This document shows positions 8,315 through 31,313 of a DNA stretch of 64,000 nt, one piece after another. A program made the position numbers and the translations under genes. The first letter of the stretch is position 1, and every line of letters starts with the position of its first letter. The notes under the pieces were generated by a model, which was not told the DNA's origin, searched no databases, and saw only the letters and a program-made list of their open reading frames with translations. The stretch spans positions 310,001-374,000 of the forward strand of contig NIVC01000996.1 of the NCBI GenBank assembly GCA_002269645.1, given 5' to 3'. Source of the DNA: Macrostomum lignano. Lineage: Eukaryota.

Positions 8315-8438
8315 TTAGAAGAAGACGGCGTAGCCGATGATTCCGTCGCCAGAGCCTGACTGAGCGGCCTGCTGGCGTCGACCCCAGCTGCTGCGACTGC
8401 GTCGGCGATAGCCAGCAGACCCGGAGCGCTTGCCGAAT
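8315..8438 (-). CDS. NPF: Neuropeptide F precursor, coding exon 2 (A|TTC GGC AAG CGC...; FGKR plus a 36-aa C-terminal extension)
   Basis: Acceptor TTGCAG at 8441-8439. The phase-2 start completes AG+A=Arg and reads R-FGKRSGSAGYRRRSRSSWGRRQQAAQSGSGDGIIGYAVFF* (TAA 8317-8315). This was the only phase-correct FGKR exon found between exon 1 and here. Confidence 0.88.
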
Positions 8439-8819
8439 CTGCAACGGCGTTTTCATGCAGGGATTTGTATTGTCATGCTCTAGGCAATGCCAAACCTTAG
8501 ATGAGAACACCAATTAGAAATTTATACAAAGTATGGTAGAATGACTCACGAAGCTGATTAGTACAGATAAAGAAAGACATGCAGGATTTCCACCAGACTT
8601 AACCCCCTACACCCCAATCCATAATTAATCCCTTCATCAATTTGTTCACTGATCCGAAAGAGGCACAGGAAATGATTCATAATTGCTGAACCACCGAACG
8701 GCAATGAATTCAACGGCGCATGCATGCATCTTGCTCTGTAGCAGGAGCGTAGACCTAGAGATCCACGAGTGCAGATATTGTCTGCCATGGACAAGTAAAG
8801 CAGAGAGTGAAAAGTTGGG

Positions 8820-8914
8820 ATAGGTAGATAGATAGATAGATAGATAGATAGATAGATAGATAGATAGATAGATAGATAGATAAATAGATAGATAGATAGA
8901 TAAATAGTAGATAG
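8820..8914. repeat. (GATA)n microsatellite
   Basis: Near-perfect TAGA tandem run. Confidence 0.97.
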
Positions 8915-9125
8915 CGAGAAAGAGCGAGCGAAGCGAGCTCTTTCGAGCTTGCTTGCCGCAGCCAATCAAGCTGAAAGCACGCACACAAGATCACCGGAAA
9001 CGATTAAGGCAGCTGGAAAGCCAATGGGCGCGGTAAGCGCTTTTATCCAGAGGAACTACCTGCTGGAACCAGCCATGCCGAACGAAAATCAGACTACTCA
9101 AGTAGTGCAAAAGAGTACGTGCAAC

Positions 9126-9866
9126 TAGATAGATAGATAGATAAATAGATAGATAGATAGATAGATAGATAGATAGATAGATAGATAGATAGATAGATAG
9201 ATAGATAGATAGATACATAGATAGATAGATAGATAGATAGATAGATAGATAGATAGATAGATAGATAGATAGATAGATAGATAGATAGATAGATAGATAG
9301 ATAGATAGATAGATAGATAGATAGATAGATAGATAGATAGATAGATAGATAGATAGATAGATAGATAGATAGATAGATAGATAGATAGATAGATAGATAG
9401 ATAGATAGATAGATAGATAGATAGATAGATAGATAGATAGATAGATAGATAGATAGATAGATAGATAGATAGATAGATAGATAGATAGATAGATAGATAG
9501 ATAGATAGATAGATAGATAGATAGATAGATAGATAGATAGATAGATAGATAGATAGATAGATAGATAGATAGATAGATAGATAGATAGATAGATAGATAG
9601 ATAGATAGATAGATAGATAGATAGATAGATAGATAGATAGATAGATAGATAGATAGATAGATAGATAGATAGATAGATAGATAGATAGATAGATAGATAG
9701 ATAGATAGATAGATAGATAGATAGATAGATAGATAGATAGATAGATAGATAGATAGATAGATAGATAGATAGATAGATAGATAGATAGATAGATAGATAG
9801 ATAGATAGATAGATAGATAGATAGATAGATAGATTGATTGATTGATTGATTGATTGATTGATTGAT
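9126..9866. repeat. (GATA)n microsatellite of ~700 bp, switching to (GATT)n at ~9833
   Basis: Almost perfect TAGA run followed by a TTGA run. Confidence 0.97.
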
Positions 9867-10228
9867 AAATGGCTTGGTCTTCTTTGCATTTTTGTTAAAA
9901 TTGGCACTGACAGCCACTAAGCCAGTAAATATACCAGATTAATAACTAATTGCCTGGACCTACGAACTGCACTGGGGATGCTCACAAAAAGTAAAACTTT
10001 TATCAGTATTTATTTGATTAGCCGCGCGCTGAGATGGGATGCCTCGAAAGTGAAGCTGAGGTATTATTTGGAATCGCATGAATATAGGAACTGGTTGGGA
10101 TATTTTAGAAATTCTAAAACTCTGAGTTATACTTTGGAATAGACTGAATAAGACTCTTTTTAGTGTGCTTCTCGGATGCTTTTATTCGTAGTAGTGCTTA
10201 CATGAATCCTTCTACTCACGCTTCCTAT

Positions 10229-27810: not shown

Positions 27811-28920
27811 ACATTAGAACACATAGAAATGAGAACAAAGACATAAGAACACATAGAAATGAGAACACAGACATTAGAACACATAGAAATGAGAACACAT
27901 ACATTAGAACACATAGAAATGAGAACACAGGCATTAGAACACATAGATATTGAGAACACAGGCATTAGAACACATAGATATTGAGAACACAGACATTAGA
28001 ACACCTAGAAATGAGAACACATACATTAGAACACATAGAAATGAGAACACAGACATTAGAACACACAGACATGAGAACACAGACATGAGAACACAGAGAA
28101 ATGAGAACACAGACATGAGAACACATAGAAATGAGAACACAGACATGAGAACACAGAGAAATGAGAGCACAGACATTAGAACACATAGAAATGAGAACAC
28201 AGACATTAGAACACCTAGAAATGAGAACACAGACATTAGAACACATAGAAAAGAGAACACAGACATTAGAACACAGACAAGAGAACACAGAAATGCGAAC
28301 ACAGACATGAGAACACAGACAAATGAGAACACAGAGATGAGAACACAGACATTAGAACACATAGAAATGAGAACACAGACATTAGAACACAGAGAAATGA
28401 TAACACAGAGATGAGAACACAGACATTAGAACACACAGACATGAGAACACAGACATTAGAACACATGGAAATGAGAACACAGACATTAAAACACATAGAA
28501 ATGAGAACACAGACATTAGAACACATAGAAACGAGAACACAGACATTAGAACACATAGAAATGAGAACACAGACATGAGAACACATAGAAATGAGAACAC
28601 AGACATGAGAACACATAGAAATGAGAACACGGAGAAATGAGAACACAGAGATGAGAACACAGACATTAGAACACATAGAAATGAGAACACAGACATTAGA
28701 ACACATAGAAATGAGAACACAGACATTAGAACACATAGAAATGAGAACACAGACATTAGAACACATAGAAATGAGAACACAGACATTAGAACACATAGAA
28801 ACGAGAACACAGACATTAGAACACATAGAAATGAGAACACAGACATGAGAATACATAGAAATGAGAACACAGACATGAGAACACATAGAAATGAGAACAC
28901 AGACATGAGAACACAGACAT
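27810..28920. repeat. 30-bp minisatellite GAACACATAGAAATGAGAACACAGACATTA (14+16-bp dimer of a GAACACA core)
   Basis: Unit read directly. Degenerate units are also present left of the LINE fragment (27098-27150). Confidence 0.95.
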
Positions 28921-29568
28921 CAGGCAAATAAGGAATTAAGGAGATGAGGACCGGAGCAAAGTCCCCTTGCTGGTCAAGTGCATGCATATAATGTATCGTC
29001 TTTTTCACGACCAAGCTATTAAGAAATGTGAAATCCACTGATCATAATCAAAGGAAGTGCAATCAGCAGTCAAGGCTGAGACCGTCTTTTGTGCGCGAAC
29101 AAAAAATCGGATTAATTAACCAGCCTTTGCTGCTGCTGCTACATGTATTTGAAAATTATATAGGCCTTAGCTAAGACGCAGGCCTACTCAAGTACACTTC
29201 AATGGTTCATATTTTATTTTGGCTGCATGCACAACCTACTGTGGTCCTCACCGAATGAAAAAAAGGGAGAAGGCAGAAGGGAGAACTGCTATTCAGAAGC
29301 TGTCGTGGAAGTGCTGCAAAAAAAACAGTTTCTAACGCTGGGCGATGGCGCTGCAGATGAATTCGATTTAGCCTTCTCTCCCAAACTCGAAAGCTCGAAC
29401 TTCCCTCTGCCGTCGTTCCCTATTTATATTTTACTCTTTTTCTGGCCTGGATGTTTCATGTTTAGTTTGACTACGGTTTTTCCTGGCTGTTTCGAGCATA
29501 TTGTAGGAGTTACTGGTCGGTTATGACCAAGGTTGTTCAATCATATAATAGAGTTTTATCTCGCTTAA

Positions 29569-30890
29569 TGGGGTGTCAGATCACTCACTGGCGTGTCAGA
29601 CAACTCACTGGGGTGTCAGATCACTCACTGGGGTGTCAGATCACTCACTGGGGTGTCAGATCACTCACTGGGGGTCAGATCACTCACTGGGGTGTCAGAT
29701 CACTCACTGGGGTGTCAGATCACTCACTGGGGTGTCAGATCACTCACAAGAGTGTCAGATCACTCACTGGGGTGTTAGATCACTTACTGGGGTGTTAGAT
29801 AACTCACTGAGGTGTTAGATCACTCACTGGGGTGTTAGATCACTCACTGAGGTGTCAGATCACTCACTGGGGTGTCAGATCACTCACTGGGGTGTTAGAT
29901 CACTCACTGGGGTGTCAGATCACTCACTGGGGTGTTAGATAACTCACTGGGGTGTTAGATCACTCACTGGGGGTCAGATCACTCACTGGGGGTCAGATCA
30001 CTCACTGGGGGTCAGATCACTCACTGGAGTGTCAGATCACTCACTGGGGTGTTAGATAACTCACTGAGTTGTTAGATAACTCACTGGGGTGTTAGATCAC
30101 TCACTGGGAGTGCTAGATCACTCACTGGGGTGTCAGATCACTCACTGGAGTGTCAGATCACTCACTGGGGTGTTAGATCACTTACTGGGGTGTTAGATAA
30201 CTCACTGAGGTGTTAGATAACTCACTAGAGTGTTAGATCACTCACTGAGGTGTTAGATAACTCACTGGGGTGTTAGATCACTCACTGGGGGTCAGATCAC
30301 TCACTGGGGGTCAGATCACTCACTGGGGGTCAGATCACTCACTGGGGTGTCAGATCACTCACTGGGGTGTCAGATCACTCACTGGGGTGTTAGATTACTC
30401 ACTAGAGTTTTATCTCGCTTACTTAGGTGTTAGATCAGTGATTGGGGTGTTAGATCACTCACTGAGGTGTTAGATCACTCACTGGGGTGTCAGATCACTC
30501 ACTGAGGGGTCAGATCACTCACTGAGGTGTCAGATCACTCACTGTGGTGTCAGATAACTCACTGGGGGTGTTAGAACACTCACTGGGGTGTCAGATCACT
30601 CACTGGGGGTGTTAGAACACTCACTGGGGTGTCAGATCACTCACTGGGGTGTTAGATCACTCACTGGGGGTGTTAGATCACTCACTGGGGTGTTAGATCA
30701 CTCACTGAGGTGTTAGATAACTCACTAGGGTGTTAGATAAGTCACTGGGGTGTCAGATCACTCACTGGGGTGTTAGATCACTCACTGGGGGTGTTAGATC
30801 ACTCAATGAGGTGTTAGATCACATAGACAATAGGTGATAGATTAGAACACTAGTTGAAGTGCTAGAACACTTCACTAAGATGTTAGATCA
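29569..30890. repeat. 20-bp minisatellite GGGGTGT[C/T]AGATCACTCACT (19-21-bp variants)
   Basis: About 60 units, degenerating toward 30890, which is about 100 bp from the NPF 5' splice site. Confidence 0.95.
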
Positions 30891-30987
30891 CGCAGTAGCA
30901 TGCTAAAAAATTAAATTAAAGATGTAAACAGAAATGAATGTCCCGAAGCAGAAATCAAGCAGTTCACACAATCGACCCCACGCTCAC

Positions 30988-31313
30988 CTTGGCCTGCCAA
31001 CCAGAGCATAGTACAGCTGCAGCCTCTCCAGGTAGTTCTTCAGCTCCTCCGGCGTCCTGAACTTGCTCGGATCCGGCGGGCCCATGCCGTCGGCGAAGCT
31101 CAGGTCCGCCGGCTCCGCGCCGCCGAAGCCGCCCGAGGCGAAGCCCGACAAGCCGTTGACGTCGTAGTCGCTCGCCAGGTCGGCGGCGTAGTCCAGCATC
31201 GCGGGCGAGGGCTCGCCGCCAACTGCGGCCGCGGCGGCTACGGTGACCGACGCGCTGATTGTCGCCATGACAACCATAGCAATCAGAGTCGACCCGTGTT
31301 TAACGGAGAACAT
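30988..31313 (-). CDS. NPF: Neuropeptide F precursor, coding exon 1 (signal peptide, acidic pro-segment, NPF up to GRP-AG|)
   Basis: Hydrophobic N-terminus, then PPDPSKFRTPEELKNYLERLQLYYALVGRPR with Tyr at positions 10 and 17 from the amidated Phe (the NPF/NPY hallmark). The donor AG|GTGAG at 30987 is phase 2 within the last Arg codon, the conserved NPY/NPF intron position. The spliced precursor is 149 aa. Confidence 0.95.

Follow-up and report, generated by a model that had tools for sequence, protein, structure and literature searches.

A two-exon neuropeptide F gene of Macrostomum lignano with a 22.5-kb intron composed mostly of tandem repeats

The analyzed stretch of DNA (64,000 nucleotides of contig NIVC01000996.1 from the flatworm Macrostomum lignano, assembly GCA_002269645.1; hereafter the window) carries on its minus strand what its sequence identifies as an ordinary two-exon prepropeptide gene of the neuropeptide F (NPY/NPF) family. 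The size of its intron is most likely a passive by-product of the birth and expansion of tandem arrays (probability roughly 0.75), and its length would then be neither needed for nor tuned to peptide production. Such arrays may grow by replication slippage or unequal exchange, through which one 18-bp array would have reached 14.3 kb here, and the spliceosome would simply remove the long, repeat-rich intron.

Gene structure and encoded peptide

The gene is BOX15_Mlig009644g3 (Mlig009644), and its spliced translation of 149 aa matches GenBank entries PAA65515.1 and PAA73737.1 exactly. The GenBank annotation was built from RNA-seq and de novo transcripts placed on the genome (PMC5730564). Because the pipeline places the same transcripts on all near-identical copies, the records are not copy-specific and transcription of the window copy is putative. 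The gene consists of the following elements:

31425..31433, minus strand: TATA-like element TATATAAAA, 112-120 nt 5' of the ATG, read from the sequence; putative core promoter
31313-30988, minus strand: coding exon 1, 326 nt from the ATG, phase 2, ending AG/GTGAGC
8439-30987, minus strand: intron, 22,549 bp, GT..AG, phase 2, 81% tandem repeat
8438-8315, minus strand: coding exon 2, 124 nt, starting TTGCAG/ATTCGGCAAGCGC

Exon 1 encodes a hydrophobic, signal-like N-terminal segment, an acidic spacer, and NPF as far as the penultimate Arg codon, of which it holds the first two bases. Exon 2 contributes the third base of this codon and Phe-Gly-Lys-Arg, which signals amidation and cleavage; a C-terminal flanking peptide of 35 aa follows, and the stop codon TAA ends at 8315. 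Judging from the family, a TATA-type promoter probably drives the gene. The signal sequence, the spacer, and the peptide as far as ...LVGRP-R(AG) would come from exon 1, and exon 2 would complete the Arg codon and add the C-terminal Phe, the Gly that donates the amide, and Lys-Arg for cleavage. A prohormone convertase, a carboxypeptidase, and the amidating enzyme would then release a peptide ending in ...GRPRF-amide.

The assignment to NPF, already made in a preliminary description of this DNA, is borne out by a match of precursor residues 79-111 to Pfam Hormone_3 (PF00159; 47.2 bits versus a cut-off of 28.7) and by the flatworm NPF of Moniezia (1k8v) as the top PDB sequence match. All 66 relatives found at E<=0.001 align at residues ~72-120; among the 10 looked up by name, five are named as NPF/NPY and another two are proteins of M. 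lignano itself. Counted from the C-terminus, residues 10 and 17 of the peptide are Tyr, a hallmark of NPF/NPY. As in known genes of the family (Moniezia expansa NPF, Schmidtea mediterranea npy-1 to npy-11), the C-terminal ...YYALVGRPRF is followed by G-KR, the Pfam match lies above the cut-off, and the intron splits the Arg codon in the terminal RF after its second base. Three features set the window gene apart. Its intron is 22.5 kb long and mostly tandem DNA, its coding region has a single intron where NPY/NPF genes usually have another towards the C-terminus, and its precursor contains, between the signal-like segment and the PP-fold region, an acidic spacer of ~50 aa without basic cleavage sites, so that the sequence does not show where the mature peptide begins. 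The paralogue Mlig021834 has an acidic spacer without basic cleavage sites as well.

The splice junction can be read with little ambiguity. Exon 1 ends GGC AGG CCA AG/GTGAGC, the acceptor at 8438 reads TTGCAG/A TTC GGC AAG CGC, and the 30988/8438 junction yields ...GRPR-F-G-K-R, with the Arg codon split between nucleotides 2 and 3. This intron position is a hallmark conserved throughout NPY/NPF genes, as the preliminary description had noted. Past the donor lie 4,501 AG dinucleotides, of which two (8438 and 8495) permit an in-phase R-F-G, and 8438 is the sole site with an RFG[KR][KR] continuation, for which we roughly estimate a chance expectation of ~0.07. The site at 8495, considered as an alternative, is a poor AAG acceptor and reads RFGIA-stop. 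The coordinates first proposed (exon 1 ending at 30988, exon 2 at 8438, 22,549 bp between them) and the uniqueness of the phase-correct exon 2 therefore hold, and for the window copy it is also true that an amidatable RPRF-G-KR end requires splicing across the repeats.

Repeats within and around the intron

Tandem Repeats Finder (TRF) detected 7-8 arrays in the intron with a total of 18.2-18.3 kb (81%), in good agreement with the at least seven arrays and ~18 kb (~80%) described before. In the direction of transcription, the intron contains:

29569..30822, minus strand: 20-mer array, sense GTGATCTAACACCCCAGTGA, 63 units, beginning 166 nt into the intron
27809..28920, minus strand: 14/30-mer array, sense ATGTCTGTGTTCTC..., ~37 units of 30
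27144..27800, plus strand: GC-rich candidate retroelement fragment of ~650 bp, RNase H C-terminal motif and tail, antisense to the NPF gene
26225..26596, minus strand: 54/113-bp array with one TCACGTGA E-box palindrome per ~54 bp
25333..25661, minus strand: (UAGA)82 microsatellite in sense RNA, upstream arm of an inverted pair
10228..24522, minus strand: 18-mer array, sense AGAGAGACTAGATGGAAG / ...CTATATGG..., 803 units, 14.3 kb
9126..9867, minus strand: (UCUA)185 microsatellite in sense RNA, downstream arm of the inverted pair
8819-8914: (CUAU)24, a further array near the downstream arm

In the 18-mer array, purines make up 81% of the sense strand (A 45, G 36, T 14, C 6%), and the unit was not found elsewhere in the window. 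Nine of the 16 CACGTG sites in the window lie within 26184-26691. The block at 27144..27800 opens with a C-terminal RNase H motif, contains an ORF (27141-27740), and plausibly represents the 3' end of a 5'-truncated retroelement. This motif lends plausibility to the LINE fragment reported earlier, but support from the databases is weak: RNase_H in Pfam matches at E=0.002, under the gathering score, and RNase H1 in the PDB at E=0.1. The 14/30-mer motif reappears at 27097-27150, on the far side of the block, which apparently sits inserted in this array; in the segment-level comparison of the three gene copies described below, it falls in unique segment 3, a spacer of like length that aligns across all of them. 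No Rfam families or tRNAs were found in the NPF intron.

With 81% tandem DNA the intron lies far above the 15% of simple and tandem repeats in the M. lignano genome, and it is ~16-20 times longer than the mean intron of 1.1-1.4 kb (PMC5730564). However, the repeat load is regional and not specific to the NPF intron, as it affects the whole 8.4-47 kb of the window: the introns of the neighboring SLC30A1-like zinc-transporter gene are 44-92% tandem, the intergenic spacer is 41% tandem, and the NPF intron minus its 18-mer array is 48% tandem. Array growth also affects similar genes elsewhere in this repeat-rich genome. In the paralogous NPF gene Mlig021834 (the preliminary description had proposed comparing paralogues for intron size), the same phase-2 intron measures 4,192 or 1,592 bp and is 79% or 46% tandem, here owing to a 13-mer unrelated to the arrays of the window gene.

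Three copies of the gene in one assembly

The same assembly holds two further near-identical NPF copies, and the mature peptide is identical in all three. Their homologous introns measure 22,549 (window), 15,685, and 8,397 bp because the 18-mer array comprises 803, 423, or 68 units, a 12-fold range; array length is thus variable within one genome, as had been guessed. Six common arrays occur in unchanged order on a non-tandem scaffold of 4.0-4.3 kb. The 20-mer array, with 63 units in the window copy, has 29 and 36 in the other two. Each array shows its own spectrum of unit variants. Divergence among the copies is 0.3-1.5% in the 400 nt 5' of the ATG and 0.2-0.7% in the CDS, versus 1.9-2.7% in unique intron DNA (seven segments pooled; 0.9-3.6% per segment; Fisher p = 0.001, 0.08, and 0.001 for the three copy pairs, CDS versus unique intron). 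The low CDS divergence and the identical mature peptide make all three copies look maintained. The window copy, whose CDS is intact and differs from the others by synonymous changes only, is marked by C at 31103 and G at 8420; the Q/R codon at 8370 is a further site that distinguishes copies.

These copies also bear on whether the large intron is real. The length of the array could be mis-estimated, the exons could have been joined via collapsed repeats, or the window copy could be a silent duplicate with the NPF mRNA stemming from the shorter copies. The genome contains duplicated chromosomes, is known to be very difficult to assemble, and was sequenced with error-prone PacBio reads (PMC5730564); a 14-kb array of 18-bp units is about as long as a read, and the transcripts, mapped to every near-identical copy, are not copy-resolved. 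Nevertheless, we regard such an artefact as highly unlikely. Exon 1, six arrays, seven unique spacers, and exon 2 follow one another in one and the same order, without any N, on three contigs that were assembled separately; this speaks against a misassembly of two loci through the repeats, which the preliminary description had named as a refuting condition. The differences of 1-3.6% in unique DNA and in the array variant spectra indicate that the copies are separate molecules, as opposed to a single locus that entered the assembly three times. Furthermore, no kb-scale exact internal duplication was found in the 18-mer array, 87% of its 180-mers being unique, and the CDS of the window copy is intact with purely synonymous differences.

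Significance of the intron length

The 12-fold range of array length on an otherwise constant scaffold argues for unconstrained slippage or unequal exchange and against a tuned length, and judging from this variation among copies array length appears neutral. The "satellite-gated neuropeptide system" envisaged earlier, with its delay timer or dosage knob, is not supported. The two copies with 8.4- and 15.7-kb introns encode the same mature peptide, so that the peptide does not depend on the window copy; the length range and the regional repeat load speak against such a system as well, and at 1-5 kb/min (PMC4654234) transcription of 22.5 kb would cost ~5-22 min. A physical basis for the dosage knob would be a brake in cis, where a longer 18-mer array lowers the NPF mRNA output of that copy: the 81%-purine RNA transcribed off a pyrimidine-rich template might cause R-loops, Pol II slowing or premature termination, or repressive chromatin. 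Combined with plain intron delay (PMC4654234, PMC4209130), such a brake would turn array length into a heritable modifier of NPF output. The strongly G-over-C, purine-rich non-template strand of the 14.3-kb array and its 12-fold length difference between copies would fit, and intronic purine-rich repeats are known to cut transcription via R-loops and premature termination (PMC4006715, PMC9558844). The array resembles the FXN intron 1 GAA repeat described there in being long, variable, purine-rich, and G-over-C on the non-template strand of the first coding intron. However, its unit is a pyrimidine-interrupted 18-mer and not a homopurine triplet. The longest purine run, counted by eye, is 12 nt, and the C and T in every unit make triplex or sticky-DNA formation unlikely. 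At the CDS level the NPF copies bear no sign of loss of function, all three being intact and conserved despite the length range, and no sign of selection on length is seen among them. At 1-5 kb/min the longest copy would take ~3-14 min more to transcribe than the shortest, a small difference where expression is in post-mitotic neurons, and an unrelated housekeeping-type neighbor has introns just as repeat-laden. A brake of this kind is therefore unlikely, and passive expansion remains the preferred reading.

The Drosophila Y-loop fertility genes kl-3 and kl-5, whose megabase satellite introns take ~90 h to transcribe (PMC6508621), resemble the window gene in that transcription has to pass through introns made mostly of simple tandem repeats; the window intron makes up ~98% of the ATG-to-stop span. 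Yet its 22.5 kb fall short of those megabases by about two orders of magnitude, and its estimated transcription time is minutes instead of ~90 h. Unlike in the Y-loop genes, repeat length varies 12-fold among functional-looking NPF copies, nothing in the window, where intact genes lie nearby, marks the locus as sex-linked or heterochromatic, and there is no sign of dedicated RNA-binding factors for the NPF intron.

Reverse-complementary arrays

Reverse-complementary arrays flank the 18-mer array in the window gene and occur at both intron ends in the paralogue. In the window gene, (UAGA)82 is 96-98% complementary to (UCUA)185; these arms of 329 nt, 15.8 kb apart, are the sole inverted pair in the intron and are found in all three copies. 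In Mlig021834, (GCAGCTTGTGTCA)n begins ~12 nt past the donor and its near-complement ends ~37 nt before the acceptor (arms of 164-534 nt, 79-95% complementary). Chance need not explain the bracketing in all three NPF copies. The arms might pair in the pre-mRNA and loop out ~15.5 kb, rendering splice-site pairing insensitive to array length, and the same principle might operate in the paralogue with arrays directly at the intron ends. In favor of this model, the cofolded 329-nt arms have a predicted energy of -497 kcal/mol versus -32 and 0 for the arms alone, the MFE fold of the Mlig021834 intron pairs position 1 with position 1588 of 1592, and related array pairs are inverted in four of five cases in all sequence examined. 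The latter proportion is not significant (p ~0.06-0.19), however, and as both arms belong to one microsatellite class, opposite orientation has a prior of ~50%. The arms of the window gene also stop short of the intron boundaries, by 5.3 kb on the donor side and by 0.7 kb on the acceptor side, and their presence in three copies reflects common descent and not independent conservation. Pairing over 15 kb in vivo is hypothetical, and 300 bp of perfect dsRNA would be expected to draw editing or RNAi. The architecture could also have arisen through inverted duplication or a foldback-type event and would then need no function, yet no inverted homology was found in the unique flanks of the arms. On balance, such a structural role seems very improbable. 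It would have a precedent in teleost introns with AC and GT repeats at their two opposite boundaries (PMC4691745), in which reverse-complementary simple repeats within one intron form a bridging structure. The M. lignano units are tetranucleotides or 13-mers and not dinucleotides, the arms of the window gene are internal and bracket a third array, and the likeness is one of sequence and predicted folds. It comprises reverse-complementary repeats in one intron, a predicted long bridging helix, and, in Mlig021834, repeats that abut both splice sites.

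Gene structure and product

The neuropeptide F (NPF) gene is encoded on the minus strand and comprises the following elements:

31433-31425, minus strand: putative TATA-type promoter element TATATAAAA
31313-30988, minus strand: coding exon 1, 326 nt, with ATG at 31313, ending ...GGC AGG CCA AG/GTGAGC
8439-30987, minus strand: intron, 22,549 bp
8438-8315, minus strand: coding exon 2, 124 nt, TTGCAG/A TTC GGC AAG CGC, with TAA ending at 8315

The end of exon 1, the phase-correct continuation at 8438 and the distance of 22,549 bp given in the preliminary description were all confirmed on the sequence. 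That this continuation is the sole one also holds, in that only 8438 gives RFGKR: of all AG dinucleotides from the donor to the window start, 4,501 in number, two give Arg-Phe-Gly in phase, 8438, which reads RFGKRSGS..., and 8495. The latter was rejected as an alternative exon 2, being preceded by a poor AAG acceptor and reading RFGIA followed by a stop, and no other alternative exon 2 was found at any of these 4,501 sites. In NPY/NPF genes, an intron separates the second and third nucleotides of the Arg codon in the terminal RF/RY (PMC7314547, PMC2953531). The same position is interrupted here (CCA AG/GTGAGC ... TTGCAG/A TTC), and the conserved intron in the C-terminal Arg codon, as previously proposed, is thus present.

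Along its entire length, the spliced product of 149 aa shows 100% identity to GenBank PAA65515.1/PAA73737.1, labelled 'hypothetical protein BOX15_Mlig009644g3/g2' of Macrostomum lignano, a free-living flatworm. Because the GenBank annotation rests on RNA-seq data and on de novo transcripts that were mapped to the genome (PMC5730564), the exon pair is transcript-derived, if not necessarily from the window copy. Pfam assigns residues 79-111 to Hormone_3 (PF00159, pancreatic hormone/NPY) with E=2e-12 and a score of 47.2 bits, the cut-off being 28.7, and the GenBank protein carries the same family in its precomputed annotation. By sequence, the best relative of solved structure is tapeworm NPF (Moniezia, 1k8v), with PYY and PP next. 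An exhaustive HMMER search recovered 66 relatives at E<=0.001 with every alignment within residues ~72-120; five of the ten looked up by name are NPF or NPY (from arthropods and one echiuran), and M. lignano itself supplies another two. A protein search with the 43-aa peptide region alone gave no matches. The C-terminal RxRF/Y motif, the Gly serving as amide donor and the dibasic site are present as ...VGRPRF-G-KR, and the motif also occurs in the relatives named NPF. The window gene is a genuine NPF gene and apparently a new, unnamed member of the well-known NPY/NPF family, and the GenBank 'hypothetical protein' is now identifiable as a neuropeptide F precursor. The gene identifier Mlig009644 was not mentioned in the literature searched.

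The N-terminus of the precursor (MFSVKHGSTLIAMVVMATISASVTVAAAAAV) is hydrophobic and, judged by inspection, signal-like. Between it and the PP-fold region lies a spacer of ~50 residues (~30-80) that is acidic or neutral, rich in Gly and Ala and devoid of a basic cleavage site, so that neither the peptide length nor the mature N-terminus is predictable from the sequence. An acidic spacer lacking such a site is common to both M. lignano NPF precursors, that of the window gene and that of a paralogue (P0124), and distinguishes them from typical NPY/NPF precursors, where the peptide (~36-40 residues) directly follows the signal peptide. Judging from what is known of the family, transcription would start from the TATA-type promoter, the intron would be removed, the mRNA translated and the signal peptide taken off; the precursor would then be cut after Lys-Arg and trimmed, and its Gly turned into a C-terminal amide, to yield ...GRPRF-NH2.

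Two other NPF genes occur in M. lignano. The more distant paralogue, Mlig021834, encodes 92 aa (...LYYALVSLPRFGKR) and carries a phase-2 intron at the NPF position, which measures 4,192 bp at one locus (L004, 3252-7443; 79% tandem) and 1,592 bp at another (L005, 3252-4843; 46% tandem). Its intronic arrays are made of a 13-mer unrelated to the repeats of the window gene. The third, NPF-like gene, Mlig009822 (Mlig009822g1, L006 3001-3414), codes for a tandem of three ...SRPRFGKR units and lacks introns, hence also the hallmark intron of the family.

Repeat content of the intron

Tandem Repeats Finder assigned 81% of the intron (18.3 kb) to seven to eight arrays, in agreement with the at least seven arrays and ~18 kb described earlier; the 18-mer array alone accounts for 63%. 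In gene orientation, the intron contains:

20-mer array, 63 units
27809-28920: 14/30-mer array (same repeat again at 27097-27150)
~27144-27800, opposite strand to the gene: GC-rich, retroelement-like block of ~650 bp, with a C-terminal RNase H motif at its start
54/113-bp array
25333-25661: (TAGA)82
10228-24522: 18-mer AGAGAGACTAGATGGAAG, 803 units, 14.3 kb
9126-9867: (TCTA)185
8819-8914: (CTAT)24, short, the last array

The LINE fragment noted between the exons corresponds to the retroelement-like block, but the latter resembles RNase H only weakly, with a sub-threshold Pfam match at E=0.002 and E=0.1 against RNase H1 in the PDB. The block is flanked on both sides by the ACAGACATGAGAACAC-type 14/30-mer repeat (27097-27150, 27809-28920), and its matches fit a 5'-truncated retroelement end inserted into the 14/30-mer array. 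The array either predates the insertion or expanded from the ends of the fragment.

Nine of the 16 CACGTG E-boxes in the window cluster at 26184-26691. Eight of these nine form the palindrome TCACGTGA. They belong to an intronic array in which each ~54-bp unit carries one such palindrome; this array is found in all three copies of the gene (3.7-6.8 units of 54 bp) and may serve as an intronic enhancer or represent repeated DNA derived from a TE. At gathering thresholds, Rfam gave no match to a functional RNA in the intron, and the whole window contains no tRNA. A literature search on Macrostomum satellite DNA yielded no information on the 18-mer. Long ORFs within the 18-mer array (e.g. 23361-24527) were rejected as genes, as they arise mechanically when a repeat unit measures 18 bp and is open in two frames. 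GT is nearly absent from the sense strand of this array (10 in 14.3 kb); avoidance of cryptic donors was discarded as an explanation, since the scarcity follows from the unit sequence and the arrays closer to exon 1 are GT-rich.

Regional and genome-wide repeat load

The tandem fraction changes along the window as follows:

1-8314, downstream of the NPF gene: 2%
31314-39574, spacer upstream of the NPF gene: 41%
~47629-39575, minus strand, SLC30A1/ZnT1-like cation-efflux gene, immediate upstream neighbour of the NPF gene, its exons mapped with Pfam and tblastn: 44%, 92% and 79% in three mapped introns
beyond 47.6 kb: 8%

The SLC30A1/ZnT1-like gene matches Cation_efflux (Pfam, E=2e-32) in its first exon ORF (47629-47027). 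Without the 18-mer array, the NPF intron is still 48% tandem. Given this value, the tandem-rich introns of the neighbouring gene and the spacer, the NPF intron is part of an array-rich domain spanning ~8.4-47 kb, of which one expanded array, the 18-mer, is the sole exceptional element. The repeat load is not special to the NPF intron, and array expansion is visible in all places looked at. Across the assembly, simple and tandem repeats account for 15% and introns average 1.1-1.4 kb (PMC5730564), so that by the standards of M. lignano the window intron is both large and rich in repeats.

Elsewhere in the window, the ORFs at 382-4460 and 6884-7342 had no Pfam matches. One of 384 aa (382-1536, plus strand), likewise without a Pfam match, lies about where the L003 copy of the NPF locus has a gene annotated as ZBED1_RNase-like_helical. 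A 432-aa ORF (55578-56876, plus strand) with weak, sub-threshold matches to zf-C2H2_12 and DUF4371 may be transposase-derived or ZBED-like.

Comparison of three gene copies

Assembly GCA_002269645.1, in which the window lies on contig NIVC01000996.1, contains two other copies of the gene, on NIVC01001643.1 (L002) and NIVC01001399.1 (L003). Three copies are expected from the duplicated large chromosomes of the sequenced DV1 line and the 180 Mb of >=95%-identical duplicated blocks in its assembly (PMC5730564).

Intron and 18-mer array in the three copies of the NPF gene
Copy; intron; 18-mer units; 18-mer array length
L001 (window); 22,549 bp; 803; 14.3 kb
L002; 15,685 bp; 423; 7.5 kb
L003; 8,397 bp; 68; 1.2 kb

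Donor and acceptor are identical in all three copies, as is the protein except for one Q/R change in the C-terminal flanking peptide. The introns share a constant scaffold of seven unique spacers, totalling 4.0-4.3 kb, and six arrays in identical order. Every one of these arrays varies in length among the copies, the 18-mer being responsible for nearly all of the size difference, and the array-length variation assumed in the preliminary description thus exists (68, 423 and 803 units). The share of the ...CTATATGG... variant among the 18-mer units falls from 43% in the window copy to 16% in L002 and 6.5% in L003, and the L002 array has private 16-bp units. Since the arrays differ in unit composition, they evolved separately.

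Divergence of the unique intron DNA is 1.9-2.7% pooled over the seven segments (0.9-3.6% per segment), and that of the CDS is lower at 0.2-0.7% (Fisher p 0.001, 0.08, 0.001), which suggests that all three copies are under continuing purifying selection or were homogenised by exchange. The closest pair of copies changes by segment: it is L002 and L003 in the 3' flank (0.5% divergence, with 2% between either and L001) but L001 and L003 in unique segment 4 (0.9%, with 3% between these and L002). This mosaic points to exchange and suggests that recombination or gene conversion took place among the three copies.

The window copy is marked in its exons by C at CDS 211 (31103) and G at CDS 345 (8420), with T at both positions in the other copies, and L003, which has the shortest intron, additionally carries G at CDS 395 (8370), causing Q132R. 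The near-identical copies with introns of 8.4, 15.7 and 22.5 kb constitute a natural allelic series in one inbred, transgenesis-capable animal, and exonic SNPs 134 nt apart that span the splice junction distinguish them. An effect of intronic repeat length on transcription or splicing is therefore measurable directly from existing RNA-seq.

Does the array control the peptide?

The NPF intron is most likely passive repeat bloat in a genome known for such repeats. Misassembly is an unlikely source of its structure: the order of all segments agrees in three contigs, the structure contains no Ns, the unique DNA differs among the copies, and the 18-mer array has no kb-scale exact duplications, 87% of its 180-mers being unique. 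The exact unit count as assembled (803) is provisional and needs long-read confirmation. According to the preliminary description, the satellite would gate the neuropeptide, with array length acting as a delay timer or dosage knob. That active peptide from the window copy needs splicing across the repeats is true, yet trivial, and two other copies exist. Gating itself is unsupported and is made less likely by the comparisons with the gene copies, the paralogue and the region. At an elongation rate of 1-5 kb/min (PMC4654234), transcription of the 22.5-kb intron takes ~5-22 min, and the longest and shortest copies differ by ~3-14 min, which makes for a quantitatively weak timer. Drosophila Y-loop genes, in contrast, have megabase introns and are transcribed over ~90 h (PMC6508621). 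The NPF intron resembles these gigantic introns in consisting mainly of simple tandem repeats (81%), but 22.5 kb and minutes stand against megabases and days; the Drosophila genes additionally rely on dedicated RNA-binding proteins to be transcribed or processed.

Alternatively, array length might have a measurable dosage effect in cis, as an R-loop-type brake. This is physically conceivable, as purines make up 81% of the non-template strand of the 18-mer array and G (36%) far exceeds C (6%), a composition of the R-loop-favouring kind, and expanded GAA in intron 1 of FXN, which throttles transcription, provides a precedent (PMC4006715, PMC9558844). However, the 18-mer unit is interrupted by pyrimidines, no decay is seen in the long-array copy, and there is no indication of selection on array length. 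We consider such a brake unlikely, and its adaptive version, a 'knob', far less likely still. The gene shows that a conserved intron can swell 3- to 20-fold through tandem arrays without visible damage to the gene. A repeat-bloated intron is in itself of little importance; the value of this one lies in the allelic series and in a lead offered by its complementary arrays.

Reverse-complementary arrays

(TAGA)82 (25333-25661) and (TCTA)185 (9126-9867), which flank the 18-mer array, are reverse complements. In the sense RNA, (UAGA)n is located upstream and (UCUA)n downstream of the 18-mer array, and (CUAU)24 is also found at 8819-8914. The arms of 329 nt are 96-98% complementary and 15.8 kb apart; they represent the only inverted pair in the intron of the window gene and are present in all three copies. 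Their RNA duplex has a predicted energy of ~-497 kcal/mol and, if formed, would loop out the big array. Within the 22,549-bp intron the arms are internal (5327-5655 and 21121-21862), away from the splice sites. In the intron of the paralogue Mlig021834, (GCAGCTTGTGTCA)n starts ~12 nt after the donor, and its near-complement (ACTGACACAAYCT)n extends up to ~37 nt before the acceptor. These arms are 164-534 nt long with 79-95% complementarity, and in the minimum-energy fold of the 1,592-nt intron position 1 pairs with position 1588. Teleost AC/GT 'bridging' introns contain complementary simple repeats at opposite intron boundaries (PMC4691745); a further hallmark of that class is splicing that relies on the helix, as judged by compensatory mutations and U2AF2 independence. 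The window gene is similar in having complementary simple repeats within one intron, but the boundary placement is absent and is present only in the paralogue.

In M. lignano, intronic arrays might tend toward reverse-complementary pairs that zip the pre-mRNA, located at the splice sites in the paralogue and on both flanks of the 14-kb array in the window gene, although we regard this as quite improbable. Across all sequence examined, four of five related array pairs are inverted, in a tiny sample where two microsatellites of one class would be oppositely oriented in 50% of cases by chance. The unique DNA beside the arms shows no inverted homology of the foldback type, either for the intron pair or for an intergenic pair, and a foldback-transposon origin of the inverted microsatellites was rejected because of these flanks. 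Owing to the sample size, the 50% orientation chance, the internal arms in the window gene and the lack of foldback-type flank homology, bridging is only suggestive. If true, the teleost AC/GT bridging introns would have a counterpart outside the vertebrates, built from longer repeat units, and the genome could tolerate runaway array expansion within essential small genes. If general, complementary arrays would be the more interesting story about spliceable introns in repeat-rich genomes.

Inverted pairs also occur outside the NPF gene. In the intergenic spacer, (AGAC)n/(GTCT)n (34974-35316 / 38673-39366) surrounds a 27-mer array; a CT-rich/GA-rich pair (40078-40665 / 45508-46141) lies in two different introns of the SLC30A1/ZnT1-like gene, flanking three exons.
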